From: Hemiscyllium ocellatum
Taxonomy: Eukaryota
Assembly: GCF_020745735.1 (NCBI RefSeq)
Contig: NC_083417.1
Coordinates: 72,478,001-72,542,000, forward strand
Reading direction: 5' to 3'
Length of the DNA: 64,000 bases
The position numbers and the translations under genes were made by a program. Numbering within the stretch: the stretch's first letter is position 1; every line of letters starts with the position of its first letter. This document shows, in pieces, positions 4,522-57,007 of this stretch. The notes beneath the pieces were generated by a model that saw only the letters and a program-made list of their open reading frames with translations, ran no database searches and had not been told where the DNA came from.

Positions 4522-4714
4522 CACATCTTCATGCTGAGTTGGATTGAATGATTTTTTTCTTTCTTCCTCCTGAGAAATAAAAATGGCATAAGCCAACAAC
4601 AGAAAAAGGGTGATACTTGGACGTGTCAGCAACCAAAGAAATCAAAAGAAAATCGAATACTATTTGCAGTTGTAAACAGCGTAAAATAGGAACCAATAAC
4701 TTCGCACTACTAGT
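4522..4714 (-). pseudogene. Pseudogene A: candidate TM exon
   Basis: gtttag|ACT then TSSAKLLVPILRCLQLQIVFDFLLISLVA. Weak alignment to the B TM (LQIVF vs LKISF). The phase does not fit without an indel, and no C1 exon was found (a CR1 occupies the expected position). Confidence 0.3.
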
Positions 4715-4871
4715 CTAAACAATACACACAGATGCTTTGAATTTATGTCTTGAGGGTTGAAGCTATGGAAACTTCTTTCAGCATTGAATGTCTCTATCAT
4801 GACTTTGATCTATACTGATACAACATAGCAAAATGAAACTGCAACTCTTCTTATTGTATATTTGATGTGAA

Positions 4872-5312
4872 GCTAGGCCTCTGACAAGGTTGCACAAGGC
4901 AGGTTAGTCAGGAAGGTGAGGTCGCATGGGATCCAGAGAGAACTAGTTAATTGGTTACAAAATTGTCTTGATGGTAGGAAGCAGAGGGCGATGGTTGAAG
5001 GTCGTTTTTTCACACTGGAGACCTGTGACCCGTGGTGTGCCACAGGGGTCGATGCTGGGAACTTGTTATTTGCTATTTACATAAATGATCTGGATGTGAA
5101 TGTACCAGGCATGATTAGAAAGTTTGCAGATGATATAAAATTTTGAGGTATCGCTGATAGCGAGGAAGGTTACCAAAATTTACAGAGGGATCTTGATCAA
5201 ACGGGGAAGCCGGCTGAGAATTGGCAAATGCAATTCAATACAGGTAAATATGAAGTGTTGCACTTTGGAAAGTGAAACAAAGTTAGATCTTAAGTAGTAA
5301 ATGGTAAAGTCC
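4872..5312 (+). mobile_element. CR1 RT fragment
   Basis: LFAIYINDLD...IRKFADD. Confidence 0.85.
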
Positions 5313-5454
5313 TGACGAACATTTCAAAATGCACAACATTACCAATAATTTCAAGGATATTCATCCTGTTAACCTGTGTTCAAATGCAAAAAAAAATTAT
5401 TGAAACCAATTTCCATGAAAAAGCTAAATTCAAAAATCTGAAGCAACCCATGAA

Positions 5455-6245
5455 CAAATGCAGCAAAAACTGGACAACATCAAGGCTTGGGCTGAAAATT
5501 TGGAAGTAACATTCATGCCATACAAATGCCAGGTAAACACCATCTTCAACAAGAGACGATTCTAAATATTATGCCTTAACACAGTGGCATCATCATCAGT
5601 GATTCCCCTGACTATCTATATTTTGGGGGTTATCATTGAGCAGAAACAGAATTGGGCAAGCCACGGACATAGAACTTCAGGTCAAAGGTGAGGAATCCTG
5701 CAGCAAGTAACTCAACTGTTGACTCCCCAAAGCCTACTCACCATTCACAAGGTGCATGTTAGGAGTGTGTTAGAATGATCCCCATTTACCTGCATGCTGC
5801 AGGTCCAAAAGCACACAAACAATTTGACATAATCCAGCAAAAACCAACCATTTGAATGGCACCACATTCAGTCACTCCATTACAGATGCTCAGCAGCAAC
5901 GGTGTGTACCATTGAAATGCACTACAGAAATTCACCAAAGATCCTGACACAGCATCTTCCAAACACACACTCATTACCATCTAGCAGGACAAGGGCAGTT
6001 AGTATATGGGAATACACCATTTCCAGGTTTCTCCCGAGCCACTCACAATCCTGAAATCACTGTTCCTTTACTGTCGCTGGGACAAAATCATATAAATTCC
6101 TCCCTAACAGCTTTGTGGGTCTGCTTACAGCACATGGATTGCAGCAATTCAAGAATGCAGCTCACCACCACCTTGTCAAGGGCAACTAGGGACAGGCAAT
6201 AAATGCTGGACCAGCCAGCGATGCCCACTTTCCACAAGCATTTTT
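5455..6245 (+). mobile_element. 3' end of a second LINE family (L2/CR1-superfamily-like)
   Basis: Decayed RT C-terminus. The 3' end aagggcaactagggacaggcaataaatgctgg...cccac is the tail type that I recall for the second SINE family. Confidence 0.6.
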
Positions 6246-6351
6246 AAAATTGAGCATATCTCAAACTTTGCAGTGTCATTGGCTCTCCAGGTCCTCCAAT
6301 GTTCTTAAACATGTTTCATTTTAAGTAAATGCAAATTTTTGCATAATATTT
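6245..6351 (-). pseudogene. Pseudogene A: 5' part of Cys-containing exon X, cut by a LINE
   Basis: ctacag|AA then EILCKNLHLLKM...ANDTAKFEIC. Aligns by eye with pseudogene B exon X (EKKC...HFFGM...NCT..ANGIEIC). Confidence 0.5.
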
Positions 6352-6394
6352 CTGTAGCTAATAACGTGTTTTTTTTTGGTGACACACAGGGTAA

Positions 6395-6695
6395 ATGGAT
6401 CTCTGGCCCAGAAGGCAGTTAACGTTCAACCACATTACTGTGGCTCTAGAATCACATGTAGACCAGACTGGATAAGGATAGCAATTTCCTTATCAAAATG
6501 TCATTAGCAAACCAGACAGGTTTTTCTGATAACCGATCATGGCTTAACATTCATTATTAGACGTTCACTTCCAGATTCTTTTTTGAATTCAAATTTCATC
6601 ATCTGCCATGGCAGGATTTGAATTCAGATTCCCAGAATACTGGTTGAGTTTCTAGATTGATTGTCTAGTGATAATTCCAATAAGCTATTGCCTTC
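6395..6695 (-). mobile_element. Second tRNA-derived SINE family
   Basis: The reverse strand carries a B-box-like gaattcaaatcctgccatggcagatg and the family body. A truncated copy lies at about 50490-50630. Confidence 0.6.
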
Positions 6696-6770
6696 TCAAC
6701 TGTTTGGCTTGTTGTTGTTGATTGCTTTTTAAACAGTTAAAACTCCACATTAATGTGCAGAGGCATTTAC

Positions 6771-7081
6771 CAAATACGGTAAGTTGCACAGAAGTTTATT
6801 TTCCAACTATTCGACGCTGATATTTGACGACACAGTAATATGTTGCAGTATCCTGGACAGTTACATTCAGAAAATTAAGGTAGGCTACTCCTTTAGTGAC
6901 ATTGAAAAACTTGCTGCTATCCTCCTGCAGAAAGGTTTTGTCACCTTCTCTCCGACAGTAAGCAATAACATTTGAATAGCCGATTTTGAGGAAGAAAAGA
7001 CAAAGCAAGAAACGGTTGAACCCCTCTAAGCTGTTATTCATTTCAGATGTGGATTCACTTTGGCCAAAATACTCACAGCAG
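6771..7081 (-). pseudogene. Pseudogene A: disabled VJ-type V exon
   Basis: gatag|CT to G|GTAAAT, 311 nt. Reads AAVSILAKVNPHLK*ITA*RGSTV(fs)LLCLFFLKIGYSNVIAYCRREG...LNVTVQDTATYYCVVKYQRRIVGK*TSVQLTVF. Three stops, one frameshift, core Trp changed to Cys. Confidence 0.85.
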
Positions 7082-7280
7082 CTATCAACCAAAGAAACAC
7101 ACTGAGATTAAACAAGAAGGACAGTCTGCACCAAATAACATTGTTATTCCAGACGATTGATGCAACAATACTTTATGGCACTTTACTCATCAACTAATTC
7201 TCCAGTTTTTAAATTATTGGTCGAATTGAATGCCATATTTTCTTCCTACTAACTTAGTGGAAAATGAGTTCTGGGAATAC

Positions 7281-7317
7281 TTAACTTGAAAAAGAAGACA
7301 ATAATAAAAGGTATCAA
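7281..7317 (-). pseudogene. Pseudogene A: leader-like exon, start codon apparently lost
   Basis: TTG-initiated LIPFIIVFFFKL then A|GTATTC. The TTA A|GT junction matches the pseudogene B leader, with a 199-bp intron to V. Confidence 0.4.
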
Positions 7318-8404
7318 TTTATTTGTCAAATGTTTTTAAGTACATATTGCGTCTTGATTACGAATAGTGAAGCTGTATAGCAAAAGAAACATGTACCTGC
7401 ACAAAAGATTCACTGCAAACAGACATCCCCTTGTCAATGCCATATAGAAATATTGGTAGTTGTGACTGAGGACAAAATAGATAAATTATTGTTAAATGCT
7501 TGTCTCTGTGCCTCATTTAATCATATACGTATGTGTGGTCAATAAGCACACGACTAATTGCTGCATTAACAAAAATATCTTTTCAAATAAGATCTGCTGT
7601 TTTTGCTATGGGAAACTGCCACAAAAATTGTGACACTAGATAGGGTACAGAAGGGTATTTGGGAGATTACTGTTGGGACTTGAAAATGTGGCTGAGGAAA
7701 GATTAGATGGGATGATGCTTTTGTCTTTCAAATAAGCTGAGCCTGAGGGAAAAATTGATTGAGATGCACAAAACTGAGATGGGCTGAGACACAGTCAATT
7801 GGGAAGAGGTCATTAACCTTCATACTGAGGTCAGTGATTGGGGGTCTCAGATTTAAAGAGATTGTTGTAAAACCTTAACAATGGGATGATGAAACATTTC
7901 CAGAGTGTGGTAGACATCTGGAACATGTGGCTTGAAAGGAAATTAGAGGTAGGCACATTTACTCTTTCACAAGTAACTTTGTTTGGATATGTACTTGACG
8001 TGCTGTAATCTGCCATACTTCTATGATGATACTGTCGCTTTAAAAGGATATTTTATCCTTTTTTTAAGAGAGGTTGAAAGGCAAATGCGCTGAGCTGTCT
8101 CTAAAAATGTAAACAATTTGTGAGGCCTTGGCTTTTTTTAAAGTTGTAACAATGGAAACAACCTGGGTGTGGCCAGCTCTCAAAGACCTGATTTTCTACG
8201 TTTTTGTTTTCTAGGACCTGCATTTCTAGATACGTCTGAATGTTAATGTTCCTTTTGGTTCTGCATTTACAGTATAACTGTATTCATTTCTCCTGATGTG
8301 GTCTCATCTACATCAGAGAGACTAAGCGCAAACTATGGGACCAGTTCAGGGAAGATCTTTAGTCTGCACACTCCAATCAACCCCACCTCCCAGTTCCCAG
8401 CCAT

Positions 8405-9965
8405 TTCATAGAACACAGAACATAGAAAAATACAGCGCAGTACAGGCCCTTCGGCCCTCGATGTTGCGCCAACCGAAGCCTACCTAACCTACACTAGCCC
8501 AAAAACCTCCATATGCTTATCCAATGCCCGTTTAAATAACCATAAAGAGGGAGAGTCCACCACTGCTACTGGCAGGGCATTCCATGAACTCACAACCCGC
8601 TGAGTAAAGAATCTACCCCTAACATCTGTCCTATACCAACCTCCCCTTAATTTAAAGCTGTGTCCCTGAGTAACAGCTGACTCCATACGCGGAAAAAGGT
8701 TCTCACTGTCAACCCTACCTAAACCCCTAATCATCTTGTACACCTCTATCAAGTCACCCCTAAACCTTCTTTCCTCCAATGAGAACAGCCACAAGTGCCT
8801 CAGCCTTTCCTCATACGATCTTCCTACCATGCCAGGCAACATCCTGGTAAACCTCCTCTGCACCCGTTCCAGTTCCTCCACATCCTTCCTATAGTATGGC
8901 GACCAAAACGGCACACAATACTCCAGATGAGGCCGCACCAGAGCTTTTACAACTGCAACATGACCTCAGGACTCCGGAACTCAATTCCTCTACCAATAAA
9001 GCTCAGTACGTCAATTGCCTTCTTCACAGCACTATTTACCTGAGTGGCAACTTTCAGAGATCTGTGTACATGGACACCAAGATCCCTCAGCTCATCCACA
9101 CTACCAAGTAGCCTACCATTAGCCCAGTAATCCATCTTCTTGTTACTCCTACCAAAGTGAATGACTTCACACTTAGCTACATTGAACTCCATTTGCCACC
9201 TTTCTGCCCAGCTCTGCAGCTTATCTATATCCCGCTGTAACCTGCCACATCCTTCTTCGCAGTCCACCATTCCACCGACTTTCGTATCATCCGCAAACTT
9301 GCTCACCCAGGCTTCAAGCCCCTCCTCCAGGTCATTTATAAAAATGACAAACAGCAATGGTCCCAAAACAGATCCTTGTGGAACACCGCTAGTAACTGCA
9401 CTCCAAGATGAACCTTTGCCATCAACTACTACCCTCTGTCTCCTTCGAGCCAGCCAATTCCTAATCCAAACTTCTAATGCACCCTCAATGCCATACCTCC
9501 GTAATTTTTGCAGTAGCTTATCATGGGGTACCTTATCGAACGCCTTGCTAAAATCCACATACACCACATCTACTGCTTTACCCTCGTCCACTTCCTTGGT
9601 CACCTTCTCAAAGAACTAAATAAGGTTTGTGAGGCACGACCTGCCCTTCACAACACCATGCTGACTATTCTTGATCACATTATTCCTATCCAGATGTTCA
9701 TAAATCCTATCCATTACAATTCTCTCTAAGACTTTACCTACAACAGAAGTGAGACTCACTGGCAGAAAGTTACTAGGGCTATCCGTACTCCCCTTCTTGA
9801 ACAAGGGGACCACATTCGCTATCTTCCAGTCTTCTGGCGCTATTCCTGTTGACAACGACGACATAAAAATCAAGGCCAATGGCTCCGCTATCTCCTCCCT
9901 AGCTTCCTAGAGGATCCTAGGATAAATGCCATCAAGTCCAGGGGACTTATCTATTTTTAACCTTT
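8405..9965 (-). mobile_element. Relatively young 5'-truncated CR1 LINE
   Basis: ORFs 9616-9879, 8947-9603 and 8489-8938 contain YVDFSKAFDKVPH, GVPQGSVLGPLLFVIFINDL and KFADDTK. Confidence 0.97.
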
Positions 9966-10009
9966 CCTTTATTCCCCAGACCTCTTCTTTACATACCTCA
10001 AAGCCATTT

Positions 10010-10470
10010 CAACTCGCCCTCCCTTTCCCTCAATGACATATCTATCCCAGGTCTCCTCCATTGTCAAAATAAGGTCATCCACAAACTGGAGGAAGAACAC
10101 CTCATCTTCCACCTTTGGAGCTTAAGAACGTATAGCTTCAAAATAGACTTAACCAGTTTCCAAATTTCCCTAACCCTACTTTATCCTAGGTGCAGCCCTG
10201 CCTCTCTACCTTGCCGTCTTGACTGGATCTCACCTGTCCATCTTCCTCCCTATCTATCTGTTCAACCCTTTCCACTGACTAATCACAATCACCTGCATCC
10301 ACCTATCACCTCTGCAACTTCCTTGCCCCCAGCCCCACTCCCCTCCATCTAATTATTTTTAAGGCCCCTTCCCCCTCCCCAGACCTACTGAAGGGTCCTG
10401 CTGGAAATATTAATACTTCTGATCCACTGATGCTGCTTGAATAGTGTGCTTTTTCCAGCTCTACATTTTA
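10010..10470 (+). mobile_element. Penelope-like element 3' remnant
   Basis: LEEEHLIFHL resembles a GIY-YIG C-terminus. It is followed by a pyrimidine-rich UTR and a decayed gaagggtc...gaaa motif near 10390. Confidence 0.55.
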
Positions 10471-11950
10471 TCAACTCTATATCCTGTTTATCCTTTTGCA
10501 ATCGTCAGCACTATCATCAACTTCATCAATCTTCATGTCATCTGCAAACTTACTAATCAGACCACTCACATCTTCCTCCAGGTCATGTATGTATACTACA
10601 AACTACAGGGGACCTGAGACTGATCCCTGTGGAACCCAGTTACTGGTCTCCATTCTGAAAAACACTCCTCCACCTCTATCCTTTGTCTGCTATGACCAAG
10701 CAAATTTTGCATCCATCTAGCCAGCCTACCCCGAATCCCCTGTAATTTCAGTTTTTGTACCAATCTGCAGTGTGGGACTTTATCAAATGCCTTCCTAAAG
10801 TCCACATTAACTGCATTCACAGCTTTTCCCTCATCAATAATTCTCATCACCACTTCAAATAATTCAAGCAGGTTGGTGCAACATGACGTTCCCAATCCAA
10901 AGCCATGGTTCCTGTTACTAACCAGTTCATTTTCTTCCAATTGTGTCGAGAATAACCTTGATTATCCAAACGAGACAAGCGGAAGTATTTTGTTAGGATA
11001 ACTGATTGTTTGGATTACTGATCTGAATGTAAACAAATGAAGCATTTATGGGACCTTGAGGTCTTGTTTGGATAATCCGAAATTCGGATAATTGATTTTC
11101 AGATAACTGAGGTTGTTCTGTATCTATCTTAGATCCTCAGTATCTTCTCCAAGAGTGTCCCCACCACAGATATCAGGATCGCTGGCCTATAATTGCCTGG
11201 ATCATCCCTGCTTTCTTTCTTAAACAAAGGGATAACATTGCCTATCTCCAGTCCTTTGGAACCTCACCTGTGGTCAAAGAGGATGTGAATATGCCTGCTA
11301 ATGCCCCAGCTATTTCTTTCATGGCCTCTTGCAGTGACCTGGGATAAATCCCATCTGGCCCTGGGGACCCGTCTCCATTAATACAATTTAAGATACGCAA
11401 ACCTTCCTCCTTTAACATATTGACATTCTCACGAGCATTCACATACTCATCCCTGATCTCAACATCAGTCATGTCCTTCCACTCAGTGAATACCGAAACA
11501 AAGTATTTGAAGTATCTCTCCCACTTCCTGTGGTTCACTGCATAAATTACCTCCTTTATCCTTGAGTGGGCATGTTCTTTCCCTTGCTACCATCTTTCTT
11601 CTAATATAAGCATTAAAAAGCCTTAGGATTCGCCTTGAACCTGTTTGCTAAAGGCATTTCATGGCCACTTTTAGCTTTCCTAATTCGGTGTTGAAGTTCG
11701 TTCCTAATTTCTCAAAACTCCTCCAGGACTTTGCCAGTTGGTATCGAATGCTACCGTTTTCCTTTTGACTATGCTTAAAATTTCCCTTGTCATCCATATT
11801 TCCAGAATGCTGCCATTCCTATCCTTCAGTTCTGCAGCGATATACATGTCCTGCACGTTAATCAACCGGTCTTCAAAAGCCTCCTACATGCTAGACATAG
11901 ATTTGCCCTCAAATAATTGCTCCCAATCCACATTCCCCAGTTTCTGTCTA
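10470..11950 (-). mobile_element. CR1 ORF2 fragment with nested MITE
   Basis: DFRKAFDKVPH and SPGPDGIYPR..E motifs. Confidence 0.9.
10945..11122. mobile_element. pogo/Tigger-like MITE
   Basis: Ends aataaccttgattatcc / gataactgaggttgttctg-TA. Related to the left end of the 17413 element. Confidence 0.6.
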
Positions 11951-12240: not shown

Positions 12241-12854
12241 CTATTTAAGCACCCTCACCCTAGGGCCACTACTCGCCCAAAGATTGGGTTTCACCGTATC
12301 TAACCTATCTGCAATTTATTTCTTGTTTTTCTTGAAAACATTTGAATCTTGAAACTTCAAATAAAGTCCGATATTGTGAAACATCCTCCTGATTTAACAC
12401 TTCAACAAAACTGCACTATGACTAAAAGCGAGATACACCACCACATAGTGCCCACCTTTGAATTCATGACTGATATTCCTGAAATATAACATACCTCCCT
12501 TTATGTTCAGCAATCTTAAGATTAAAAATTGCTAGTTTAGAAAAATGAAGCATTGTCAATAAAATTAAAAATTGACAAAGTCACAAGTCAATATTTTTGC
12601 TAAAATACACCCCTCTCAATTTCATTTCCTACCGTCAACTCTTTGATCACATTATGAAATAAATGACACATAGAATCAGAAAACTGATACCTGCTTTGCT
12701 GGTAGACAGCTGGTGGTGATTGTTGCATATTTGTGTATGATGTTTGTAGATGAAACTGCCCTTGAATGGTAACATAAATCATGATGTGATGATCTCCTAA
12801 CAGATGTGGACATAACAATCCCAAATCTAAACTTTAAACATGCTAGTATGACAG

Positions 12855-26722: not shown

Positions 26723-26777
26723 ATGTTAGCACTTGATCTGTTGAATTACCTTTCGACATTAGGCATTATTTACATAG
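26723..26777 (+). CDS. Gene C exon 1: signal peptide of IgSF V-C1-TM-ITIM receptor
   Basis: ATG at 26723, MLALDLLNYLSTLGIIYI, then G|GTATAT phase-1 donor. A 181-bp intron joins it in frame to the V exon. Confidence 0.75.
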
Positions 26778-26958: not shown

Positions 26959-27282
26959 CCTCAGACACTGTGACCCCTTTCTCCTTGCATCAGGTCCCAC
27001 AGCGTGTGACCGGAGTGAAAGGCGAAAACATTTCCATTAATTGCTCTGTGTCTTTATTCATTCGGAATGCAAAATTAGATGTTTATTGGTGGAAGAAAGG
27101 GCAACGCTCAACTTTTAGTATGACGAGAGAGAAAACGAAAATAGCAATGCCTTTTCACCAAGGATTTTCCGAGTTCCACCTGATCAATGTGAGTTTTCAA
27201 GATTCTGGGGTTTATTACTGCAGCGTTAAAAAAGGGCCAGGAATGAGGTCTAATGGCACTGGGACTGAGGTCACAGTATACG
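26959..27282 (+). CDS. Gene C exon 2: germline-joined VJ-type Ig V domain
   Basis: Acceptor tttctgacag|CC, donor G|GTAAGT, 324 nt phase 1-1, open. Motifs GENISINC, VYWWKKG, NVSFQDSGVYYC and J-like SNGTGTEVTV. No RSS seen between the V and J parts. Confidence 0.95.
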
Positions 27283-28786: not shown

Positions 28787-29068
28787 TGCCTCCAACTCCA
28801 ATAACGATTACTCGACTGTCCTCTCAATTCCTCACACTTCTCTGTACGACAGCTAGCTTCTTCCCAGAAGAATTTAACCTCACCTGGTATGAAAATGACA
28901 GAATAATTACATCTGGAATAAATACTACAAAGTTTCAGGAAAGGGAGGGATTACATCAAGTTTCCAGCTCCTTATATCCTGTGGAGATCGGGTTAGTTTA
29001 TACCTGCCAAGTTTCTCATGTTTCACTGGTGGACCCAGCCAATGACAGCTACTTGGTTTCAGATCAGG
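28787..29068 (+). CDS. Gene C exon 3: Ig C1-set domain
   Basis: ttattcacag|TG to G|GTAAGA, 282 nt phase 1-1, open. C1 motifs LLCTTASFFPEEFNLTWY and YTCQVSH. Confidence 0.95.
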
Positions 29069-30123: not shown

Positions 30124-30237
30124 GTAAAAAAGGAAGTGGTTTCTCCTATGCCGTAGCATTAAGCTGGACAGCAGGATGTTTTCTAATTTTGGTTCTGGCA
30201 ATTGTTGTCAGGCAATACAAACTAGAGAGATCTCATG
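30124..30237 (+). CDS. Gene C exon 4: uncharged transmembrane segment
   Basis: catctttag|GT to G|GTAAGA, 114 nt phase 1-1. Encodes GKKGSGFSYAVALSWTAGCFLILVLAIVVRQYKLERSH. Confidence 0.88.
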
Positions 30238-31808: not shown

Positions 31809-31852
31809 GTGATACAGTTGCTGAGGAAATTGACAGCCAGGTTGAGGAGCAG
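31809..31852 (+). CDS. Gene C exon 5: 44-nt cytoplasmic exon
   Basis: tgttctgtggcag|GT to CAG|GTCAGT. Encodes GDTVAEEIDSQVEEQ. It gives exactly the phase 1-to-0 change needed to keep exon 6 in frame. Confidence 0.75.
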
Positions 31853-34497: not shown

Positions 34498-34641
34498 GTC
34501 ATCCATAAAGGAAAAGTGGAGGACCCAGCTTATGCTGATCTCCACTTCAATGAACACAGGAAAATGTGGAAACCCAGAAATGAGAAAGCGACTGTTGTTT
34601 ATACAAACATAAATTACCTTTCTGTCCAGGACCAATTCTGA
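34498..34641 (+). CDS. Gene C exon 6: cytoplasmic tail with ITIM-type motifs and stop
   Basis: aattctccacag|GTC, phase 0. Encodes VIHKGKVEDPAYADLHFNEHRKMWKPRNEKATVVYTNINYLSVQDQF*. VVYTNI fits the ITIM consensus and PAYADL is ITIM-like. Confidence 0.88.
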   Translation, partial: VIHKGKVEDPAYADLHFNEHRKMWKPRNEKATVVYTNINYLSVQDQF

Positions 34642-44719: not shown

Positions 44720-46720
44720 AACATAGAAACAAACACTTTGGCCCACCATGTTTGTGATGATCAACAAATTCCAAACTATACTAATCCTTTTACCTAAACT
44801 TTGTCCAGTTACCACTATGCCGGGCATTGTATGTGCTCATTAACATGCTTCTTAAATGCTGCAAGAGTACCTGCCAGGCAGCACATACCATGGTTCTACA
44901 ACCTTATGGGTGAAAACATGTTCCCTCAGGTACCCTCTAAAACACTTATTCATCATCGTAAACTGATGCCCTCTTGTCTCAGACAAACCTGCCATGGGGA
45001 AAAGATACTCACAGTCTATATTATCTATGACTCTCATTATTTTGTAGTCGACAATCAGATCCCCTCTCACTCTCCTCTGCTTCATGGAAAAAAAACCTGT
45101 CCTCACCAGTCTCTTCTCGTAACTCAAACTTTTCATCCCAGGCAACATCTCCTCTGCATCCTCTCCAATTATCCTTCCAAAAGTATGGCAATCAGTTCTG
45201 CACGACTTTGTACCTCAGTACTCTGAAAGAGCCTACCATTCATTGTGTATATCCTTCCATTTTTAGACCTCCCAAAATGCATCATCTCATAATTATCAGG
45301 ATTAAATTCCATTTGCCATTGTTCAATTTACAGGCTGATTAATAAGAATACAACCTGAGTCCATTTGCATCACTGTCCACAGCGCCATCACTTTTCATGT
45401 TATCTGCAAACTTATTAATTATACCCTCCACATTCAGATCAAGTCATTAATGCAGATAACAAACAACAAAGCTCCCAACACCGATCCCTGTAGTATAGCA
45501 CTGGTCACTAAATCACTAAAACAATCCTCTGCCATTGCCCTTTGCTTCTATTTGCAAGCCAAATTTGCATCCAGTTTGCCAACATGCCTTGGATCCCATG
45601 GGGTCTTACCATCTGGTAAACTTCCATTTGGGATCTTGGAAAAGGCCTTACTGAAGTTCACGTAAACCATTTCAACTGCACTACTTTCATCAATATATTT
45701 AGTTTCTTTTTTTAGAAAAAAAAACAAGTTAAATTAGTAGACATGATCTCCCTCCAACAAATCTGTACTGACTTTCCCTGACCAATCCTTGCCTTTCCAA
45801 GTCTTAACTCGTCTTAACTAATCCTGTTCCGCAGAATTTTTTCAAATAATATTCCTATCACTGACTTCAGACTAACTGGTCTGGCATTGATTAGTCCAGC
45901 CGTACTGCGTTTCTTGAACTATTGAACCACATTAGTTATCTTGCAGTCATCTGACACTTCACCCATGGAACCAGCAAAGTCCTAAATATCTCTTCCATGG
46001 CCCCAGCAAACTCTTCCCTTGCTTCACATGCAGTCTGGGATGTATCTCATCAGGCCCTGATGATTACACCTTCATTCTCGTATATCTCCTCCAAATTAAT
46101 CCTATTATGTTCAAGAATCTCACCATCCCAAATGAAATCTTCAGCTGTATCAATTTTCTCCTTTTGCGAAAAGAGGTGAGAAATATTCCTTTAATACCTC
46201 ACCAATGTCTTCTGGCTCCATATGCCCTTTGGTCTCTCATTAGCCCCACTCTTTCCCACTGAATCTTCATGTTCTTCATATTATTCTAAAATATCTTGGG
46301 GTTTCCCTTAATTATATTGGCCAATGTTATTTCATTGCCCCTCTCTGCCTTCCTAATTTTCTTTTAAAAAAAACACCCTTCACTCTCTTTACTTCTGAAG
46401 GATGTAGACTTACTTGTAATTAGATGCTCGCAATCTATATTTGCCAGATCCGGTCCATTGATATTGAATTTGGCCTTCTCCCAATTCCGACAATTTTGCA
46501 TGATCCTTTTCCCTTTCCACAATGACTTTGAAACTTACACAGGTGTAGTCACTACTCACAAAACGCTTGCCCAGTGAAACTTCACTTGCCGATTTCATTC
46601 CATCGGATTAGATTAAACATTGCTCCATCTGTCGTTGGACTATCTATGTAATGGCACAAAAACCTCTCCTGGTTGCATTTCAAAAGTTCCAGCCCAAATA
46701 ATCCTTTCACACATTAATTA
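44720..46720 (-). mobile_element. Decayed CR1 ORF2
   Basis: MLPGM..LSYE.RL...G.FS...RR.RGDLI and gtgggtcttacc/aaggccttactgaagttc (DFSKAF.K.PH). Confidence 0.8.
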
Positions 46721-49499
46721 ATTTATATTTTCTGGAGTAAAGATTCAAGTTTGCATAATAATCTAGGACAATTACTTTGTCTCCTTGAGTTTGCTGGCAC
46801 TTTGTTACATTCTTAAAAGTCGAAAGTTTCTATTCAATATACAGTGGACAAAAATGAAAGCTGCCTCATTGTAACCCAATGAACTTAATGCAAACTATGA
46901 AACATCATGCTTAAATGTTTGAAACCTCAGAAGACAAACTCTGCAAAATTCTGTTTCCTGAGCATAAAATGATTGCATTAGCGCAACATTGTCTTTTTTC
47001 AACATTTGTACGGAAATCATTAAACATTACATCCTGTTTCAAATTTCAGATGTTGTGTACTTTTTGCTGTAGATCTAGAAAGAATTGTTCTGAATTTCCT
47101 TTACAAAGGTAAATAAAGTTGCTTAAACACAGGTCTCTTCATTTGGAAATTAAAGTGCAACTCAAACTGTATGCAATACTATTTAGTGCATTAATAGGTT
47201 TGAAACTGGCATTCCCTCATTTGTTTGCTGAATGCAGAAATTAATAAGTTAATTTCTATCTGAAGATTTTTTTGTCGAGATTGAAATATGATACAACAGA
47301 TTAATGGGAAGCCTGGTCATATAGAGAGCAATGAGCTAATTTAACAGTTTATTTCTTTTAAATACAAAAAAATATATTTTTATTTTACATATATGCACTC
47401 AAACTCTTTGTGCAATATTGCTTTATCAACAGGATTTTTTCATTCTCTTCAGATCTGCATCTCTGAACCTGATTCAGTGAAATATGGTGTCACATTTCAC
47501 AACCTGACAAGAGCAAAGGAAATGAAAGTACACATTAGCAAAGCTTAGAATCATATTCAAGCAGAGAAATTCAAAGGCTGTCAACTCAATGCATATCACA
47601 CTTACAATAAGGTAAATGATTAAATCAAATGAATAGAGATGAATGGCTATGGTGTAATTGACATTAAAAACACACCACTGCAGGATGATCAAGAGAACAG
47701 ATTATTCAATGATATTCAGGTTGGACAAAGGAAAATAAGATATTGTCATATTACACGAGTAGTAATGGATGAGACCTGTATTAGTCAAGACGAACCACAG
47801 ATAGAACATCCAAAGGATATCCTCAATGATGGAGCTAAGTAACAGCAAGCAGTAGGAAATGACAGTAGTCGCTAATAATCCACAAATGTGTAATAATGTG
47901 GGGCATAGACAACATAAAAAGATCAACGCAGTATCGTACGTGGGCTTTGCAGCAATCACGACTAGATTCAATCTGGACATAAATTTGACAAACTAATGAG
48001 CACTAAAGCTGTGAAGAATGAGTTTTGGAATGTGTTATGGATTGTGTTTTTCGAACGCTATGTTGAGGATTAGACTACAGAACTATGCCCCCCCAAAAAA
48101 GTAGTAATTAACAATATTGTTGTAAGTGAACCTGGAAACATGAGTGATGATAAAATGATGGAATTATTCATGACAAATATCATAGTTGTAAGAGTTTGTA
48201 ATAGTTTCAGCCAATTCTTCCTCTATCTTCCTTTCATATTCAAGATGAAGTTGCACTTTTGCCAAGACAGTAAAACTGTTTGACTTCATCCAGGCAGTTA
48301 AAAAAGTTTATTTTGATTGTGATGTCTGAATCATTCAGATCAATTCCAAAGCAAAGTCCGACGGTGAAGGACCTCACCTCATCTTTGTGATCAGTAGGAA
48401 TTATTGCCTTTTTCTATGAATCTGATGGCAACAAAGTTGATATTCATTGTCAAGAGAGATATGATATTCACATTCATCTATAAGCCAGCAAAATACCATT
48501 CAATTCAGATAGACACAAGGTACAATTGACTAACTCAACTCAGAATGTGACTCAGAATGTAACTCAAAATTTGGAACACAATTGCACACATTTAGTTGTG
48601 ATTTGAAGCTGTGGAAATATTCCTTCGGTGAAATTCACTAGACTTCCTTCTGATCTGAAAAGATAAGTTTTAACATGACATCGGTCTAAACCTTACCATG
48701 AAATACTAGCGTTGAATCAACACAAATGCTTGCAAGTAGTTTCGCATCATCCACTTATTTTAATTGAACAAGTTAGATTTCAGTACCCAATTATGCAAAG
48801 GCAATTTAATCAATGCATACATGCAAGTTATCTCACTAAGTATGTATATTCCTACTCGTACCTTGAGATATGATGAATAGGAGGCACTTAACAATGGTCA
48901 CTATGCAAGATAGAATTGCAAGCACTCCACGGTCCCATCCAAAGACAACAGCAGCAATGAGTTTAGCGGCAAAATCTATGAGAGGCACATAAAATTTAAA
49001 TAAGAAATTGTATTAGAAACCAGAGGCATATAAATTTAAATATCACATGATTTATTTCCATTAAATTTCCTTGTTAGTATTCTAATATTGTTCATGAAAT
49101 TTCATTTGTCAGTTCTCTGGTCAGTTTTCCTGCAGTCGGATACAAAGGGGGTAAGAATTTGGAGAAATAACAACAACAATGAAGAAATTTGAATAGTCAT
49201 CTTTTAATTCGTCAAAATACAGATAATTAATGTATCTAACACCAGCAGTATTCAATTACAAAGAGTTCAGATCAGATTGCAGATCTAATCTCAGTTCCCT
49301 GAGAGTCACTTTGGAGCACAAATGAACTGACGCCATTTTAAATTAAAACTTTTTGCATATGCAACCAGTCCAACAGTTGAGGAGAGAAAGTTGCACAGTT
49401 GTAATGCACTGTGCTAACAATGGAGAACTCCATGTTTGTGGCTCATGGATTTTAATACCACCAGCGTAGGTAGTTAAATTTGAAATCCTGGAATGGCCG

Positions 49500-50485
49500 T
49501 CGTACAAACTGGTCTCCTTGATATAACAAAGACGTTAAACTTGAAAGAGCTCATAAAACATTTAGAGGGATGTTGCATGAGTTGAATTCTCATTCAGGTT
49601 GTGAAAGTTTCTTGGACCTGTCCCTAGAAATTATTCATGCACATTACTGTTTGTGTAGCTAACTCCAGAATTGGGCAGTTCCCTGTGATATTATATGTCA
49701 CGGGACAGTTTCCTGCTCATAATCCTTGAGTGGTCCGGGTACTCAGTTCTGACTGCCATGCACATCCTGCTACATGGGCCCTTTGTCGAGCATGTTGTGT
49801 GGCTTCATATGCAGGCAAGGCTCCCGTACACCGGAGACACCCTTGAGCACTGAAGCTGGGTTATCCAAGCTCACAGGGACTCCCCTGCTTTCTGATAGAA
49901 CATGTTTGCCAATCCTGTAATTCTGTCATTATGTAATCTGGCACAATTCGAGTATGCTGTGGAGCGTGCTGGCCATACCTTGGGACTGTATTAGTCATTA
50001 ACAGAAGCGCTAAGGGACACATTATCACCATTACTGTCTCCTTCCCCATCAGTCCACTCATACTCCATATCGAAGAGGCTACTTGGTGTGAAGCTTTGGA
50101 GGCTGAATGTTGACTTTATAGATGTTTATAAAATCATGAGGGCTATGGATAGGTTAAATAGTCAAGGCATTTTCCCCAGAGTAGGGGAGTCCAAAACTAG
50201 AGGCATGAGTATAAGGTGAGCGGGGAGTGATTTAAAAGAGACCTAACAGACAATATTTTATGCAGAAGGTCGTGTGTATACGGAATGAACTGCCAAAGGA
50301 AGGGATAGAGGCTGGTACAACTGCGACATTTAAAAGACATTTAGATGTGTATACGACACAAAACATTTGGAGGAATGTGGGCCAAATGCTGGCAAATGGG
50401 TCTCGATTAGTTTAGGTTAAATGTTTGGCATAGACAAGTTGGAATGAAGGATCCACTTCCATGCTGTACATCTCTATGACTTTAA
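49500..50485 (+). mobile_element. CR1 3' end interrupted by the inverted gag copy
   Basis: CR1 sequence stops at gatgttgc (49576) and resumes at ...ggaggctga..tttatagatgtttataaaatcatgagg (about 50090). Confidence 0.8.
49574..50075 (-). repeat. Inverted duplicate of the ERV gag segment 50852-51399
   Basis: The reverse complement matches along its length, e.g. tgcatgagttgaattctcattcaggttgtgaaagtttcttggacctg vs caggtccaagaaactttcacaacctgaatgagaattcaactcatgca. Confidence 0.95.
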
Positions 50486-50851
50486 GACCAGCTAGCTTAC
50501 TTAATGTCCTTTCAGAAGGAATTCTGCCATTGTCAGCTGGCCTGCAAATGACTCACTGCTAAACGGATGATTGTTAACTGCCCTCTTGAAAATTAGGCAT
50601 CAACAATAAATTTCCTCCCAGTAAATAAAAAAAAACATTTCCTCCCATTGAATATAAAAATAATAATCAAACGGTGTTTCGTATTATGTTGATTGGGAAA
50701 GTTCACCTTGAACTACATTAGTTTCTAAACGTATGTGAAGATATTCAAAGGACTTCAAAATAAATAACGACAAAAAGGACTACTCAATGAATGGCAAGGC
50801 ACTAGTAAGTTCAGAGTAACTCATTGGGTCCCAATCATTGGACCAGTATTC

Positions 50852-51399
50852 CTTCGATATGGAATATGAATGGATTGATGGGGAAGGAGACATTAATGGT
50901 GATAATGTGTCCCTTAGCACTTAATGACTTCCGTTAATGACTAATACAGTCCCAGGGTATGGCCAGCACGCTCCACAGCCGGAATTGTGCCGGATTACAT
51001 AATGACAGAACTACAGGATTGGCAAATATGTTCTATCAGAAAGCAGGGGAGTCCCTGGGAGCTTGGATAACCCAGCTTCAGTGCTCAAGGGTGTCTAAAG
51101 TTTCTCTCAAAAATAAGAAGCTCCAGAGTACGAGAGCCTTGCCTGCATATGAAGCCATACATCATGCTCTACATAAGGCCCATGTAGCAGGATCACTGGC
51201 TGCATGGGTGCGTATAGCAGTCAGAACTGAGTATCCAGATCACGCATGGATTACGAGCAGGAAACTGTCCCAAGGCACACAATATCACAGGGAATTGCCC
51301 AATTCTGGAGTTAGCTACACAAACAGGTTTATGCATGAATAATTTCTAGGGACAGGTCCAAGAAACTTTCACAACCTGAATGAGAATTCAACTCATGCA
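50852..51399 (+). mobile_element. gag: Endogenous retrovirus gag remnant (class III / ERV-L-like)
   Basis: ORF 50959-51342 contains LANMFYQKAGESLGAWI and GSLAAWV...AV...YP, resembling ERV-L gag (YRQKxGE.xWxWIL; SLxxWL). Confidence 0.6.
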
Positions 51400-51881
51400 C
51401 AATGTTAATATGCAGTGTAGGTGAAAATGTTGTAGGTTTGTGTGTTGTGAGTGGGCTGGAAATATGAACCACAAGAGAAATGCTTTATTTTGGTGTATGA
51501 AGGGTGAATGTGGGCGTTGGGAAATCTGTGTGGGAACCCATCCCTTTCACGAATTGTTAATGATAAGCAGGATTGAGGGCACAAGGATATCACAGATATT
51601 ACTATAGAGAGAGAGAGACTGCAGAGGTTTATATGATCTGCTGTCCCCCTGTATAAGCTGAGCTGAGATGTCACATTTTATTAAATAGAATCTTAAGTTA
51701 TTTCATGAATTTAACTTGAAAGAATTTCGGGGATTTACATATTAATGAATGGAAATCTGCAACCCATTGTAAACGTTGAAAGACTTAACACTAATCTCGG
51801 TCTCTTCAATATGTCGCATCAGTACGATGACACTATGATCTTTTGCTCTAAACTCTGGTCCTATGATCCTTCTCCATGAGC

Positions 51882-51916
51882 TACCTGATGAAGGAGCAGC
51901 GCTCCGAAAGCTTGTA
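51882..51916 (+). ncRNA. Minimal type I hammerhead ribozyme motif, intact core, in a Penelope-type tail
   Basis: tac-CTGATGA-A-GGAGC(agc)GCTCC-GAA-AGCT-T-gta. All core positions are present, with 5-bp stem II, palindromic AGCT stem III and 3-bp stem I. Confidence 0.7.
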
Positions 51917-51974
51917 CTTCCAAATAAACATGTAGAATTATAACCTGGTGTTGTGTGTTTTTTAAATTTATCCC

Positions 51975-53340
51975 AGTATGACAGCCTTGTGTGACCAGTA
52001 AAGAGACCAGAGGGTAACCTGCGAATGACAATGGATGACTAACGGTTAAACCAACACACACCACCATTTGCATTTACTCTCCCAGACATTGTAACATTAC
52101 TGGAGCAGCTGTCATTGGGAGCGGCATGCCATAATCAACCGAGCTAATGCTTTATTCTTCTTGGTGAGAATTCACAGAATCAGTTTGCTTTCACATGGGA
52201 GGATACAGAGTTTTTGGTTTGTAGGTTGTGCACGGCAATTTGCTCAGTCCAAACCTCTGCCATAACTTAACAGCCTTGGATCTGGAGACGTTCTCTCTCT
52301 CTAGTGATATAACCAGTCCTTTATACTGATGATATATTGCTACATGACCTATGAGAGGAGGTAGGAGCCAAAGAGATAGCTACTTGACTCAGCATCTACG
52401 GATTAGAGTCTGGAAAAATAATCTTAAGAAAATCTAAGGACCAAGCCAGTGAGTGATTTTGCTGAGAACACAATGGGCCGAGGAGACCATCTTACTTATG
52501 ACAAAGTAAGAAATAAAATCAGTGAGGTGCAAGCCCGGTTCACTAAATAAATTACCCAAGGCTTTGTGGAGATGTTAGGTTCTTAAAGAAGGCACGTCTC
52601 TCACTTATCCTAATTACACTTCAGCACAGAACTGGTTTCTTACTGTGACGTCAGGGCACAGCGACTCAGGGAGATGTTCCCTTGGACAGTGGCTTATATG
52701 TGAGTTATTAGCTGACCTGCAAAACTGCTACCAAGATAAAAGGGAGTAAACCATATTAAGGATTATAATGATGAACCATGGATACAGGTCCATTGAATGC
52801 CACACCATTACCCAATCATCAGCAGTTGTATGACAACTATACCCAAATTATATGTTCGAATAGCTTACCTTCCCATTGCCACTCTTTAGATGCACCAGTC
52901 TCATCACAGAGGCGGGGCAGCAGAGATGTGCTCTTCTCTATTCTAGGTTGAGCAAAGGCACGAATATGTGCATTAATTTCCATGTTTATTGAGACTCAGC
53001 AAACCATAATTGCTAAAGCTGGGCAACAACTGAACTATTTGTTGCATGAATCAAATCCTTAGCTTATAAAGATTTAGCAAATTGACATTTGACTGACATG
53101 GCTTGAAAGTTTGTTAATAACACTATTTGGGAAATTATCACACCTAGATGAATCTTGGTGCTGAAGCTAACTGAATATATTGTAGTCTGCCCTAACTGTA
53201 TAGTTTGGAGCAGTGTTGTCAAGTAAACAGTGCATTGCTATCCGCACACTTGTCTTGGAAAGAATTATTTCATCTCACCATTACTACCTTAACACTTATG
53301 CCTGACTTATTAAAGAGTAATTGCAATGCCACAGCATGAA
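51975..53340 (+). mobile_element. pol: Endogenous retrovirus pol remnant (RT to integrase), ERV-L-like
   Basis: Interrupted frames: SLV*PVKRPEGNLRMTMDD*RLNQHTPPFAFTLPDIVTLLEQL, QFAFTWE, SPNLCHNLTALDL, LYTDDILL (52322), KKI*GPSQ*V. An integrase-like H/Y/LI remnant lies near 53280. Confidence 0.85.
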
Positions 53341-53624
53341 TACCACTTTTTTTTTAATTTTAAGTAGTACATACCTGGAGTTATGGTTCCCGTTTAGTAC
53401 TCTACATCATCTATTTGGGGAATTGCAGAGGACATCCTTGCTTTATGGCAAATGGTTGGGTAACAGCAATTAGACTCAGTTGGAACAATAGCCAGAATGC
53501 CTAGTATACCCCTTATATTCTATGACCTTTGAATCATGAGTTTTGCAGTGTAGCAGAGGTACCTGCACAGGGAGGAAGTTACCCCTCAATGATACAATGT
53601 ACATAAAATTGGCCTGAACCCCAT

Positions 53625-53933
53625 ATGTGTTTATCCATCGCTCACATTGTCCACCTTAATAGTAAGAGAGAGGAACCACCCGCCAACCCATTTAGGGACA
53701 CTTTATACGTTATCTACGATGAAATTAAGTATAAACACAACATAATCAAAGAATGGGACAAGATAACTATGCATTGCCCGACTAATCGATTGAGTAGGTT
53801 TTCTCCAGAAGCGATATTTAAGAAATTTCAGGCTTTCCTTGCACAGCAGCAGCAGATTCTTTCTCATTTGGCAACAATACACCATGGTTTCTTATGGCAA
53901 GAAACGGCCATTGCTTACAACCATGATCAATAG
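53625..53933 (+). mobile_element. Candidate env-position ORF of the ERV
   Basis: 102-aa ORF directly downstream of the integrase remnant, with RLSR|FS and a following helical QQQQILSHLATIHHG stretch. The identity is inferred from position only. Confidence 0.35.
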
Positions 53934-54779
53934 ATTGGCAAAGCAGACAATGTAGGAACCCTTCCTCTGCATGATTGGTGGGTTATATTTAAAGGAGTGA
54001 TCATCAAAAGCTTCAGCAGTACTCTCAGTTTTATGGTCTCCAATTGTTAAATGAATGATAATTGCTTCTCGTTTTTATGTATTTGTGTAAAGGACTGTGA
54101 ACTATATCGCATGTATAACCAACTTGTAGCTATATAGCAGTATGCGCATGTTTGGATAAGGCTTTGACAATCTATTTTGAAGGTATCAATATGTGCAGTG
54201 TGGTCTAAAAAATGGTTCATCTAAACTAAACCATTCAGGGTTTAATGTCGAAGGATTAATTGAACATGAAAATCAACAATTGAAGACAAGTGGAAAATGA
54301 TGTCAAAACAGTTTTCTTTGGCTGGAAGGTCACTTCATGGACTTGGCTGGGTGGGGAAGAGAATATTGTGCAGTTAAAAATAAGCCGCCTTTACGATTAT
54401 TTTCAGCATGTTTTCTCCCTAGTGGAAAACTGGGAAAAGTATTGGAAAGACTTTGAAATGCTGATATAGCATGTAACAGTAGATCCAATATAGTATTCAT
54501 ATCGAGAATTTATCCCATTCAGTGAACTTTCACCATTGGGCTGGAGTTCGTGAAACTGGCACCGTGGAATCTGAGGTAAAGCTCCAAGTGTTGCCATCGC
54601 CAAACTCCCCAATGAGCAGAAAGACAGTATGAGAATCATTTTGTTTAACATATACCTGAGTTACCATTTAACATTTATACGTGTCCATAATTTTAAGTGT
54701 CAATTATTAATTCATACATGTATGAAGTATTAAACAGATAAATTATCTGAACAAGGAGTACAAGTCTTCTTGTAGCCAG

Positions 54780-55280
54780 TTCAATCAGATTTAAAACAGT
54801 CCGTTAGGTACTTTCAGCCTAACAATGCGGAAAGGTTTGTTTGCACTGGGGCGATTCACCAGGTTGCTGTCTGGACCACAGCATTTCAGCTATGAAAAGT
54901 TTGGAGAAGCTTAATTGTTTTCTTTGGAACAAAAACGGTTCAGGGGAGCCCTGACTGAGCTGTATATCAGTATGAAGGCACAGACAGGGTGGATTAAAAA
55001 CAACTGCTCTCTTTAGGTGAAGGATGAACGATGAGAGGTCATAGTTTTTTATAAGGAAAAGGTTTAGAGTGAAATTGAGGATTGATTTTTCTCCGAGAGT
55101 GTGTTGGGTATCTGGAATACACTGTCTGAGGGGGTAAAAGACCTGGTAAAATGTACATGGTTGATTACTTAAAATGTTACAACATTCAAGACGGTCAGAC
55201 AAATGCTGGAAAATATGATTATTGTAAATTGTCGGGCTGCACTCAATGGACCGAAGTGTCTCTTCCTGCTGTATAAACTG
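54780..55280 (+). mobile_element. CR1 3' fragment
   Basis: Degenerate LER.QRRFTR...WNTL motifs. Confidence 0.7.
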
Positions 55281-55364
55281 ATGTTATTCCTCTCCAACTC
55301 CTTGCCCCTATGTAATATTTCCAGTTGTTGAATTTAACCTTGTCTTCAATAGTGAATTTCAACA

Positions 55365-55525
55365 TTATGTCCTTAATCTCAACGATGGGAACTCGCGGTG
55401 ATGAATATCCACTGTTAGACGTCTCCCACGTGATAATATGCCACACAAATTCTTAATAAGACGAAGAAAGGAAATCTTTAACCACACAACATTTCAAATT
55501 TTGGGATTGATATAATGCGAGGTAA
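55365..55525 (-). pseudogene. Pseudogene B: candidate TM exon with Lys and short tail
   Basis: 85-bp intron after C1, ccgtcag|TT phase 1. Reads TSHYINPKI*NVVWLKISFLRLIKNLCGILSRGRR...LRLRT*. Degenerate, with one stop. Confidence 0.4.
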
Positions 55526-55610
55526 CTGACGGTTGTAATTACTTTGCACTTGTTTGTCCTTTTTAAGCAATATCGGAAAGATTCCCGTACAACGTGCCAT
55601 GGAACCTTAC

Positions 55611-55952
55611 CTTCATTCAGAACAGTGTCGCTGGCATTTGCTGGAAATGAACTCGAAACATGATATTCTTGACATGTATAGACGATGTCATTCCCGGGTG
55701 ACTTTGGCATGTCCAAGGAGCTGACGACTTTATAAAGACCCTCGCCGGTTGCCTGTTTTACGTTTCTAAACCCAGTGAAGATTTGTGTACCGTCTCTGTG
55801 CCAAGTCAGGTTATAGTCTTCTGGATAAAAGCCAGATGTCCTGCATTGTAATTTGGAAGAAGCAGGCGGAGTGTGCGGGCATTGGACTTCTACTCTAATA
55901 TTTAAAAGGTTTGCTTAACGATCCAAGAGATTTATTTCTGGGTAGGCCGGTG
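55611..55952 (-). pseudogene. Pseudogene B: C1-set exon with in-frame stop
   Basis: APAYPEINLLDR*...KLQCRTSGFYPEDYNLTWHRDG...EGLYKVVSSL...VYTCQEYH, donor G|GTAAGG. The expected acceptor AG is missing (tttgtg|CA). Confidence 0.85.
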
Positions 55953-56241
55953 CACAAATCGTCATTATTTATACTGGGAGGGATTGCTATTGCTTTTACC
56001 ATGTAGCGACCTCCTTATGGAATTGATGCATCATCTGTAGATGGGGTGCTACCTTCTGACCATATTAATTAACACAAATCTGTTTGAGTTGCCATACTGC
56101 AACCTGCTCGCAATGACCAGTTTGGGAACTGGATCATAGAAAACGAGACTGCTGGAGTACCAACGAGGGGAATAGGAATTTGGCTTTTCAAAGCAGAAAA
56201 CAACATGACATTTAAAATGTTTAATATTGCCGACAACTTAC

Positions 56242-56444
56242 CCTGTTACCCCATGCTTAAACTGTCAAACCTACTTCACGTAGAAGTCTTGCATTAACTT
56301 TGTATTCAACACAAATTTCAATACCATTTGCTGACACAGTGCAGTTGCCGCACTGTGTTGTGCCACTGGTGGTGCCTTTTAACCAAGTTATTAAGCATGT
56401 CATCCCAAAGAAGTGAACGATTTTGTATGCACTGCATTTTTTCT
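56242..56444 (-). pseudogene. Pseudogene B: Cys-containing exon X between V and C1
   Basis: The 75-bp upstream intron has a TACTAAT branch site and cttttcag|AG acceptor. Reads EKKCSAYKIVHFFGMTCLITWLKGTTSGTTQCGNCTVSANGIEICVEYKVNARLLREVGLTV*, with a strong G|GTAAGT donor at 56241. Confidence 0.6.
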
Positions 56445-56519
56445 CTGAAAAGTAGCTGCCCACGCAAATTCACTGTTCATTAGTACGAAGGCTTAACGTT
56501 TAACTGTGGTGACACTAAC

Positions 56520-56788
56520 CGTAGTCAACAAGTTGCGCAGCGGGTTTGTGAGAAACCATTTGATGCTGATATTTGACTATACAGTAATATGTTCCAGCGT
56601 CCATGACAGTCACATTGAAGAGATTACTTCCTCCAGAAGCATCCTGTTACCTTCCCTCGACCAGAAAACATTGATGTTTGAATGGTTGAGTTCAAAAGGG
56701 AAGGGGCATCGCATGATAACTCTTGGAGTAATCAGGGTCTTTATTTGCAGAATATCCGGAGTGACATTGTCCGACGTGCACACCACAA
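56520..56788 (-). pseudogene. Pseudogene B: frameshifted VJ-type V exon
   Basis: aatag|TT to G|GTTAGT, 269 nt (not 3n). Reads RVIMRCPFPFELNHSNINVFWSREG...(fs)NLFNVTVMDAGTYYCIVKYQHQ...AQLVDY. Paralogous to the pseudogene A V exon. Confidence 0.85.
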
Positions 56789-56961
56789 CTATTAACAAAA
56801 GCTAAATACACAGATTTGGCAGGGAGAATGGCTCACACCATGAAGTAATATAATTAATTCAGTACACTCGTTCAGCAGGAATTTAGCATGCCTTGCTGTT
56901 TTAATCCTGCTCCACGATCTGAATTTCTGTCCTAGCTGAATTATCACAAATCTGTTTTCAC

Positions 56962-57007
56962 TTAACCACAGTATTCTTAAGACAAGGAACATTGACGTGA
57001 AAAGCAT
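56962..57007 (-). pseudogene. Pseudogene B: leader exon
   Basis: MLFTSMFLVLRILWL then A|GTGAAA, phase 1. The 173-bp intron is similar to the 181 bp in gene C, and splicing gives the signal-like MLFTSMFLVLRILWLIVVCTS. Confidence 0.6.

Follow-up and report, generated by a model that had tools for sequence, protein, structure and literature searches.

A probable tandem cluster of V-C1 immune-receptor genes in Hemiscyllium ocellatum, with one intact inhibitory-type gene and two pseudogenes

Introduction

In receptor families of the KIR, Ly49, PIR/LILR, and Siglec-5/14 type, an activating twin arises when an inhibitory gene gains a charged transmembrane (TM) residue and loses the tail that carries its immunoreceptor tyrosine-based inhibitory motifs (ITIMs), the two ectodomains remaining nearly identical. 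Members of such families turn over quickly, and pseudogenes are frequent. Whether cartilaginous fish have followed a comparable route is the question raised by a 64-kb stretch of the Hemiscyllium ocellatum genome (contig NC_083417.1, positions 72,478,001 to 72,542,000; hereafter the window), in which one receptor gene on the + strand, gene C, lies between two relatives on the - strand, genes A and B. The original prediction took this arrangement for a cluster of paired receptors under birth-and-death evolution, with A and B as dead activating-type copies and C as their surviving inhibitory partner.

The window is free of assembly gaps. It very probably represents part of a tandem cluster of a cartilaginous-fish V-C1 ('SIRP-alpha-like') immune-receptor family, in which C is intact, A and B are pseudogenes, and the TM segments previously assigned to A and B belong to introns. 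All three are ordinary members of a family that has been annotated but not studied, and serve as examples, not as a new principle. The main value of the analysis is a corrected annotation, in which two pseudogenes, both of them unannotated, and an intact inhibitory gene are assigned to a large shark family that evolves fast.

The V-C1 family and its members in the window

Six-frame translation of the window yields one V-type exon with a YYC motif on the + strand (~27.0-27.3 kb) and two on the - strand (~6.8-7.1 and ~56.5-56.8 kb), together with one C1-type exon per strand (28.8-29.1 kb, +; 55.6-55.9 kb, -). Pfam recognizes V-set and C1-set domains, and the exon maps place a V-set domain ahead of a single C1-set domain, each encoded by its own phase-1 exon; gene A keeps the V exon only. 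Phylogenetic trees, along with DNA collinearity with loci of Stegostoma, group A, B, and C with annotated members of the family. They share its exon plan, consisting of a leader, a V exon with a J-like end, C1, TM, and short phase-1 ITIM tail exons, and differ from it in that A and B are broken copies. The single-pass TM exon and the short ITIM tail exons of this plan are complete in C, represented by tail exons with KLTYSAL in A, and by the TM exon and tail exon 1 in B.

An exhaustive search with the C1 exon of B and follow-up searches recovered V-C1 receptors of sharks, rays, and one chimaera, and additional homologue searches gave no new proteins among the matches listed. Annotated examples include LOC125459911 (P0153), P0152, and P0156 of Stegostoma tigrinum and P0014, P0022, and P0082 of Heterodontus francisci; protein identity to these family examples is 50-67%. 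The names given to family members in databases are inconsistent, ranging over SIRP-alpha-like, tapasin-related-like, NCR3LG1-like, and MHC class II beta-like, and including 'tyrosine-protein phosphatase non-receptor type substrate 1-like', a SIRP-alpha-like label.

Gene C as an intact inhibitory-type receptor

The six exons of gene C (Table 1) have canonical AG/GT splice sites and assemble into an open coding sequence of 963 nt for 320 amino acids. With its leader, V and C1 domains, uncharged TM segment, and ITIM tail, C is, as far as its sequence can tell, an intact inhibitory-type receptor. The ITIM tail that had been predicted for it is present, with one canonical ITIM (VVYTNI) and one ITIM-like motif (PAYADL); these two Tyr motifs make it shorter than the tails of most family members. 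By analogy with other ITIM receptors, such a tail would recruit SH2 phosphatases. The proteins closest to C are P0082 of Heterodontus and P0147 of Scyliorhinus, with 53-66% identity per domain. Word content suggests that C is transcribed, as 86% of the sampled words of its V exon occur in X22, a small run from the assembly animal, and none from 1.8 kb of B do; against this it has to be said that X22 is only guessed to be RNA, and that the support comes from words, not reads.

Gene C is not the partner of either A or B. It falls into a separate clade with a support of 100/100 in a tree built from ectodomains only, shares 24-39% V and 45% C1 identity with A or B, and has DNA matches to them in repeats only, in contrast to the near-identical ectodomains expected of a receptor pair.

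Table 1. Positions of receptor-gene features and of previously proposed exons in the window
Feature	Positions	Strand	Description and evidence
Gene C exon 1, leader	26723..26777	+	MLALDLLNYLSTLGIIYI; phase 1; ATG, GT donor; resembles leaders of P0147 and P0133
Gene C exon 2, V-set	26959..27282	+	J-like GTGTEVTVY end; Pfam V-set E 8.8e-12; AG/GT sites
Gene C exon 3, C1-set	28787..29068	+	Pfam C1-set E 4.3e-10; 66% identity to Heterodontus P0082
Gene C exon 4, TM	30124..30237	+	Uncharged TM (FSYAVALSWTAGCFLILVLAIVV), then RQYKLERSHG; hydropathy 2.57; AG/GT sites, frame
Gene C exon 5	31809..31852	+	DTVAEEIDSQVEEQ; motif common to P0166, P0147, and P0154; AG/GT sites
Gene C exon 6, tail	34498..34641	+	PAYADL and ITIM VVYTNI, then stop; E 3e-4 to P0082
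Gene B leader	57099..57153	-	In-frame TAA at 57108-57106; donor GA (GT in A-type genes, GC in Stegostoma)
Gene B V exon	56520..56788	-	269 nt; single 43-nt deletion relative to 312 nt in Stegostoma
Gene B C1 exon	55611..55913	-	303 nt, open; Pfam C1-set E 3.5e-8; 67% identity to P0153; AG/GT sites
Gene B true TM exon	48862..48975	-	114 nt, open, DFAAKLIAAVVFGWDRGVLAILSCIVTIVKCLLFIISQ; AG/GT sites; tblastn E 1.7e-7 to P0153; gapless DNA alignment
Gene B tail exon 1	48378..48421	-	Third codon TAG at 48416-48414 (AAG in Stegostoma); DNA alignment
Last block of B collinear with Stegostoma	46705..46819	-	The following two Stegostoma ITIM exons have no counterpart
Gene A leader remnant	7397..7451	-	ATG now ATT, in-frame TGA; alignment to Stegostoma L002 leader
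Gene A V exon, dead	6771..7081	-	TGA, TAG, TAA, 1-nt deletion, conserved Trp to Cys; tblastn E 3e-28 to P0154; L002 DNA alignment
Gene A site of missing C1 and TM exons	4873..5419	-	Collinearity blocks, exon maps
Gene A tail exon 1 remnant	4522..4569	-	1-nt insertion leading to TGA; alignment to L002
Gene A tail exon 2	968..1077	-	ITIM KLTYSAL, 1-nt deletion further on; tblastn E 1e-6 to P0152, 2e-6 to P0156
Gene A tail exon 3 remnant	705..824	-	…QEKSPVYAVAKS; low end approximate; tblastn E 6e-4 to P0152; alignment
Proposed TM string ILRCL, intron	4673..4687	-	Between TM exon and tail exon 1 in Stegostoma; 77% identity
Proposed TM string WLKISF, intron	55467..55484	-	Stegostoma C1-TM intron, 73%
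Proposed 'X' exon, intron	56242..56444	-	Stegostoma V-C1 intron, 69%

Two pseudogenes of an older clade

Genes A and B are both pseudogenes. Within the V-C1 family they belong to a clade that is older than and distinct from that of C, and recognizable by a YYCxVKYQ motif in V. The V motifs that they had been said to share are found in translation as YCRREG and YYCVVKYQ in A and as FWSREG and YYCIVKYQ in B. Also borne out is that they are closer to each other than to C, by V identity (58% over 26 amino acids), by a DNA match (63 bp at 82.5%), and by the trees. The ectodomain-only tree pairs B with Stegostoma P0153 (100/100) and places A with the N-terminal half of Hemiscyllium P0154, Rhincodon P0011, and the Stegostoma twins P0152 and P0156 (100/99); a second tree has the same topology.

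At the DNA level, collinearity between the B locus and that of Stegostoma P0153 (L001) starts upstream of the leader and ends shortly ahead of the ITIM exons, with 65-82% identity, introns included. The A locus is likewise collinear, through its introns, with the loci of P0156 (L002) and P0152 (L003), an identity range of 65-77% covering the A and B loci. The same-locus counterparts in Stegostoma are P0152/P0156 for A and P0153 for B. In P0153, the V and C1 exons are followed at a distance of 9 kb by the TM exon, and then by a tail exon of 44 nt and two exons with ITIMs. Both A and B carry disabling lesions in exons that are intact in the orthologues and have retained their introns, and the coding sequence of C is open, so that in this respect the original prediction of two dead copies and a surviving one was accurate. 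The cluster is multigenic, and its lineage-specific duplications and pseudogenes support the proposed birth-and-death evolution, a turnover that A and B document.

Gene A is long dead, with at least 10 lesions. At the place of its missing C1 and TM exons, 546 bp with a fragment of a long interspersed nuclear element (LINE) reverse transcriptase replace ~2.8 kb of L002 (11731-14522), and a reverse-transcriptase-like open reading frame at 4877-5143 (+) lies exactly where these exons are missing. All three tail exons are frameshifted, and an 11-nt deletion in tail exon 3 takes out an RLTYLAL motif; the ITIM KLTYSAL survives. Located 5.5 kb upstream of the A V exon, a 72-amino-acid stretch at 12609-12824 (-) has 47% identity (E 3e-13) to an odd 5' exon in the gene model of Stegostoma P0152, and could be either a conserved upstream exon or a repeat.

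Gene B died more recently, and its lesions are few: a leader stop, a dead leader donor, and the 43-nt V deletion, which removes 14 codons and shifts the frame. Indels are far fewer in its exons than in its introns, the V, C1, and TM exons are without a stop, and lineage-specific nonsynonymous and synonymous changes number 47/25 in B and 26/14 in Stegostoma, the same ratio. The scarcity of exon indels and the equal ratios indicate that B was a coding gene until fairly recently. Contigs of four animals, from two studies, cover the leader, V, and C1 exons of B (55400-57200) with 0-1 base differences and no gaps. Owing to this near-identity, the V deletion and the leader stop look fixed, and no presence/absence polymorphism of B was seen in this interval among the contigs of the four animals. 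Motif and alignment searches of the interval from 35 to 48.8 kb found none of the ITIM exons of B.

Two side observations concern the neighborhood and the relatives of B. A 42-amino-acid open stretch at 57452-57577 (-) (…SVYYCCVDTGKRTTSNG…) weakly resembles the F-G strands of the C V domain (BLASTP E 2e-4, single comparison), and is perhaps what remains of a V exon close upstream of the B leader. In Rhincodon typus, a 118-amino-acid gene-model fragment (P0066) is 68% identical to the C1 domain of B and continues in another frame after …PESDT; possibly, the B-type copy of the whale shark is broken too.

Intronic origin of the proposed transmembrane strings

The activating character of A and B had been read from two strings with basic residues, ILRCL in A and WLKISF in B. 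Both exist in translation, and both are intronic. WLKISF lies 130 nt 3' of the C1 donor of B, and the true TM exon follows 6.6 kb further downstream. It is most improbable that A and B were activating-type genes with these strings as TM exons and C as the inhibitory partner that outlived them. What speaks for such a model is that both strings sit in open stretches, the one 3' of the B C1 exon being open for 51 codons. Against it, the two segments match Stegostoma introns with the degree of identity usual for introns, read-through past the C1 donor runs into a stop after 4 codons in each of the three Stegostoma genes, hydropathy is low with charged or polar residues inside (for the WLKISF segment, a best 19-residue value of 1.49 with R, K, and N), the homologous TM and tail exons are located elsewhere, and C belongs to the other clade with its low V identity.

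Two related candidates were set aside on similar grounds. Placing ILRCL in a frameshifted TM exon of A conflicts with the collinearity blocks, which put the string in an intron and show the TM exon to be deleted. The proposed 'X' exon is also intron sequence: the aligned Stegostoma intron has stops and indels, the orthologous protein joins V directly to C1, and the segment has no BLASTP match to C1. A tblastn alignment of P0159 that spans 'X' is carried by its V part only.

The closest intact relatives, P0153 (for B) and P0152 (for A), as well as P0014 (from the same clade), have uncharged TM segments and ITIM tails, and use a TM exon other than those first proposed. This is the very finding that the original prediction had named as contradicting it. 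Since the proposed strings are intronic and the intact relatives are of the ITIM type with uncharged TM segments, the assignment of A and B to the activating type is unsupported as it was made. What is left of it is that the real TM segment of B, and of B only, has an Arg together with a cut tail, a combination that could equally be due to decay; the TM exon of A is deleted.

Arginine in the membrane segments of relatives

The TM exon of B reads GWDRG in mid-membrane, with the Asp and Arg codons at 48934-48929. An Arg is encoded by the same TM exon in several relatives: P0022 of Heterodontus (GCARGAL), which is the twin of P0014 and has a short tail; P0156 of Stegostoma (SCVARA), which is the twin of P0152; Hemiscyllium P0154-N (GCALRA); and the ray proteins P0158-P0160 (GWIVRG or DWIVRG), of which P0158 and P0160 are short-tailed. 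The Arg of B is aligned with that of P0022 and the ray proteins, and those of P0156 and P0154-N are at or next to that position. On the ectodomain-only tree, this amounts to at least four independent TM Arg changes among 8 rows. In P0156, the tail is cut by a 2-nt deletion relative to P0152 in the ITIM exon (L002 ~17.43-17.84 kb versus L003 25.24-25.67 kb), so that the distal Tyr motifs are lost to a frameshift. P0156 thereby shows that a gene with a TM Arg can keep decaying ITIM exons, and as the TM exon of A is deleted, the ITIM-type tail exons that A has kept leave its signalling type unreadable.

A short-tailed group of proteins from sharks (P0026, P0155, P0165, P0157) and rays (P0158-P0160) has a strongly conserved Arg-containing TM segment, PVHLIYRS..GILVII..IIF[DN]H[VI]. 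This group belongs to the same well-supported clade as A and B, whose nearest outgroups its members are, and provides candidate activating receptors of elasmobranchs. Neither a short-tailed exon of this PVHLIYRS type nor further family genes were found in the window. Read-through at the C1 donor was considered as a source of this TM segment (P0026, P0155, P0157) and rejected, for the product is hydrophilic in B and ends after the 4 codons mentioned above in Stegostoma; the read-through stretch bears only a weak resemblance to it, in VPWHVVRES.

The last state of gene B

These relatives suggest a history for B, in which it may have taken the inhibitory-to-activating route by acquiring a TM Arg and a truncated tail before being killed by the V deletion. 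We tentatively propose, with a confidence that falls just short of even, that B is a fossil of such a conversion, and that an Arg beside the conserved Gly in mid-membrane arose at least four times in the clade, accompanied by loss of the ITIM tail wherever the tail is known. Whether B was a working activating-type receptor shortly before its death, signalling through adaptors with immunoreceptor tyrosine-based activation motifs after an ITIM gene had gained a TM Arg and lost its tail, and struck only then by the V deletion and leader defects, is an evenly balanced matter. The Arg of B precedes the conserved Gly (DRGVL) as it does in P0022 (ARGAL) and the rays (VRGAV, VRGSL), and in each of the three sister pairs (P0014/P0022, P0152/P0156, and P0153/B) it is the Arg-bearing member whose tail is truncated. 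Its TM exon is open with good splice sites, and its death appears recent from the few exon indels and the absence of stops beyond the lesions listed.

Several points weigh against this reading of B. Three pairs out of three are not significant, and the same-locus Stegostoma gene is of the ITIM type without an Arg. The Asp beside the Arg of B is not typical of adaptor-coupled receptors, and the charged pair may be a product of decay; the TM exon has evolved at a nearly neutral rate in the B lineage, with 18 changes in 111 nt and a ratio of nonsynonymous to synonymous rates (dN/dS) of ~1. A single late deletion can account for the loss of the ITIM exons. A reservation about the overall account of the cluster is that the 'intact' Stegostoma counterpart may itself be impaired, because its leader (L001 21392-21446), though conserved, has a GC donor (the equivalent at 57153-57097 in the window has GA), and because the RefSeq model P0153 begins with a far-off first exon and lacks a normal signal peptide.

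The competing explanation is that the Asp-Arg pair, the TAG in tail exon 1, and the missing ITIM exons reflect the ordinary decay of an inhibitory gene that never passed through an activating phase, and its chances come close to even without quite reaching it. It fits the inhibitory type of the same-locus Stegostoma gene and the dN/dS of the TM exon, and charged residues commonly arise when Gly, Ala, Ser, or Thr codons change at random. Large deletions and nonsense changes accumulate elsewhere in the cluster, as A illustrates, and constraint on the B-type gene may have been weak for long, its leader donor being GC already in Stegostoma. Less easily explained by decay are the location of the Arg, at the one position where relatives repeatedly carry it, and the small number of other lesions in the 686 nt of the V, C1, and TM exons.

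Relation to known receptor systems

Mammalian SIRP-alpha and SIRP-beta resemble the shark genes in that a C1-set domain comes after the V domain at the N terminus, and in that inhibitory members have ITIM tails; in the shark clade, too, there are closely related paralogues that combine a basic TM residue with a short tail. They differ in that each gene, here and in the shark homologues, has one C1 exon in place of the V-C1-C1 ectodomain of SIRP, and in that the basic TM residue is Arg, not Lys. The nearest mammalian match is a rodent SIRP-alpha (P0164), with 30% identity over 35% of the query (E 1.5e-11), and generic immunoglobulin V and C1 domains rank ahead of SIRP in sequence searches of the PDB. 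The window is without flanking non-family genes. A literature search on shark SIRP-like or paired V-C1 receptors found nothing specific.

The non-rearranging V exon with a joined J and the C1-set domains also recall UrIg and UrIg2. These elasmobranch molecules form disulfide-linked dimers with highest levels in liver or gill, and are described without mention of an ITIM; UrIg2, which consists of VJ and nine C1 domains, has been compared with three C domains from the N terminus of UrIg (PMC12227049). Their multi-C1 structure (VJ and at least three C1 domains), as opposed to the single C1 and ITIM tail seen here, led to the rejection of UrIg/UrIg2 as the family in question (PMC12227049).

Taken with the homologues of other species, the pseudogenes suggest repeated gain of a membrane Arg with loss of the inhibitory tail. 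If true, the evolution of paired inhibitory and activating receptors would date back to the oldest jawed vertebrates, and the route known from mammalian KIR, SIRP, and LILR would already operate, with quick turnover, in cartilaginous fish. The shark pattern differs from the conversions in KIR, Ly49, PIR/LILR, and Siglec-5/14 in that it is read from sequence alone and in that the candidate, B, is dead.

Repeats between the receptor genes

LINE reverse-transcriptase fragments are numerous on both strands between the receptor genes; besides the one at 4877-5143 (+), they include those at 8492-9906 (-) and 61990-62517 (-), among others.

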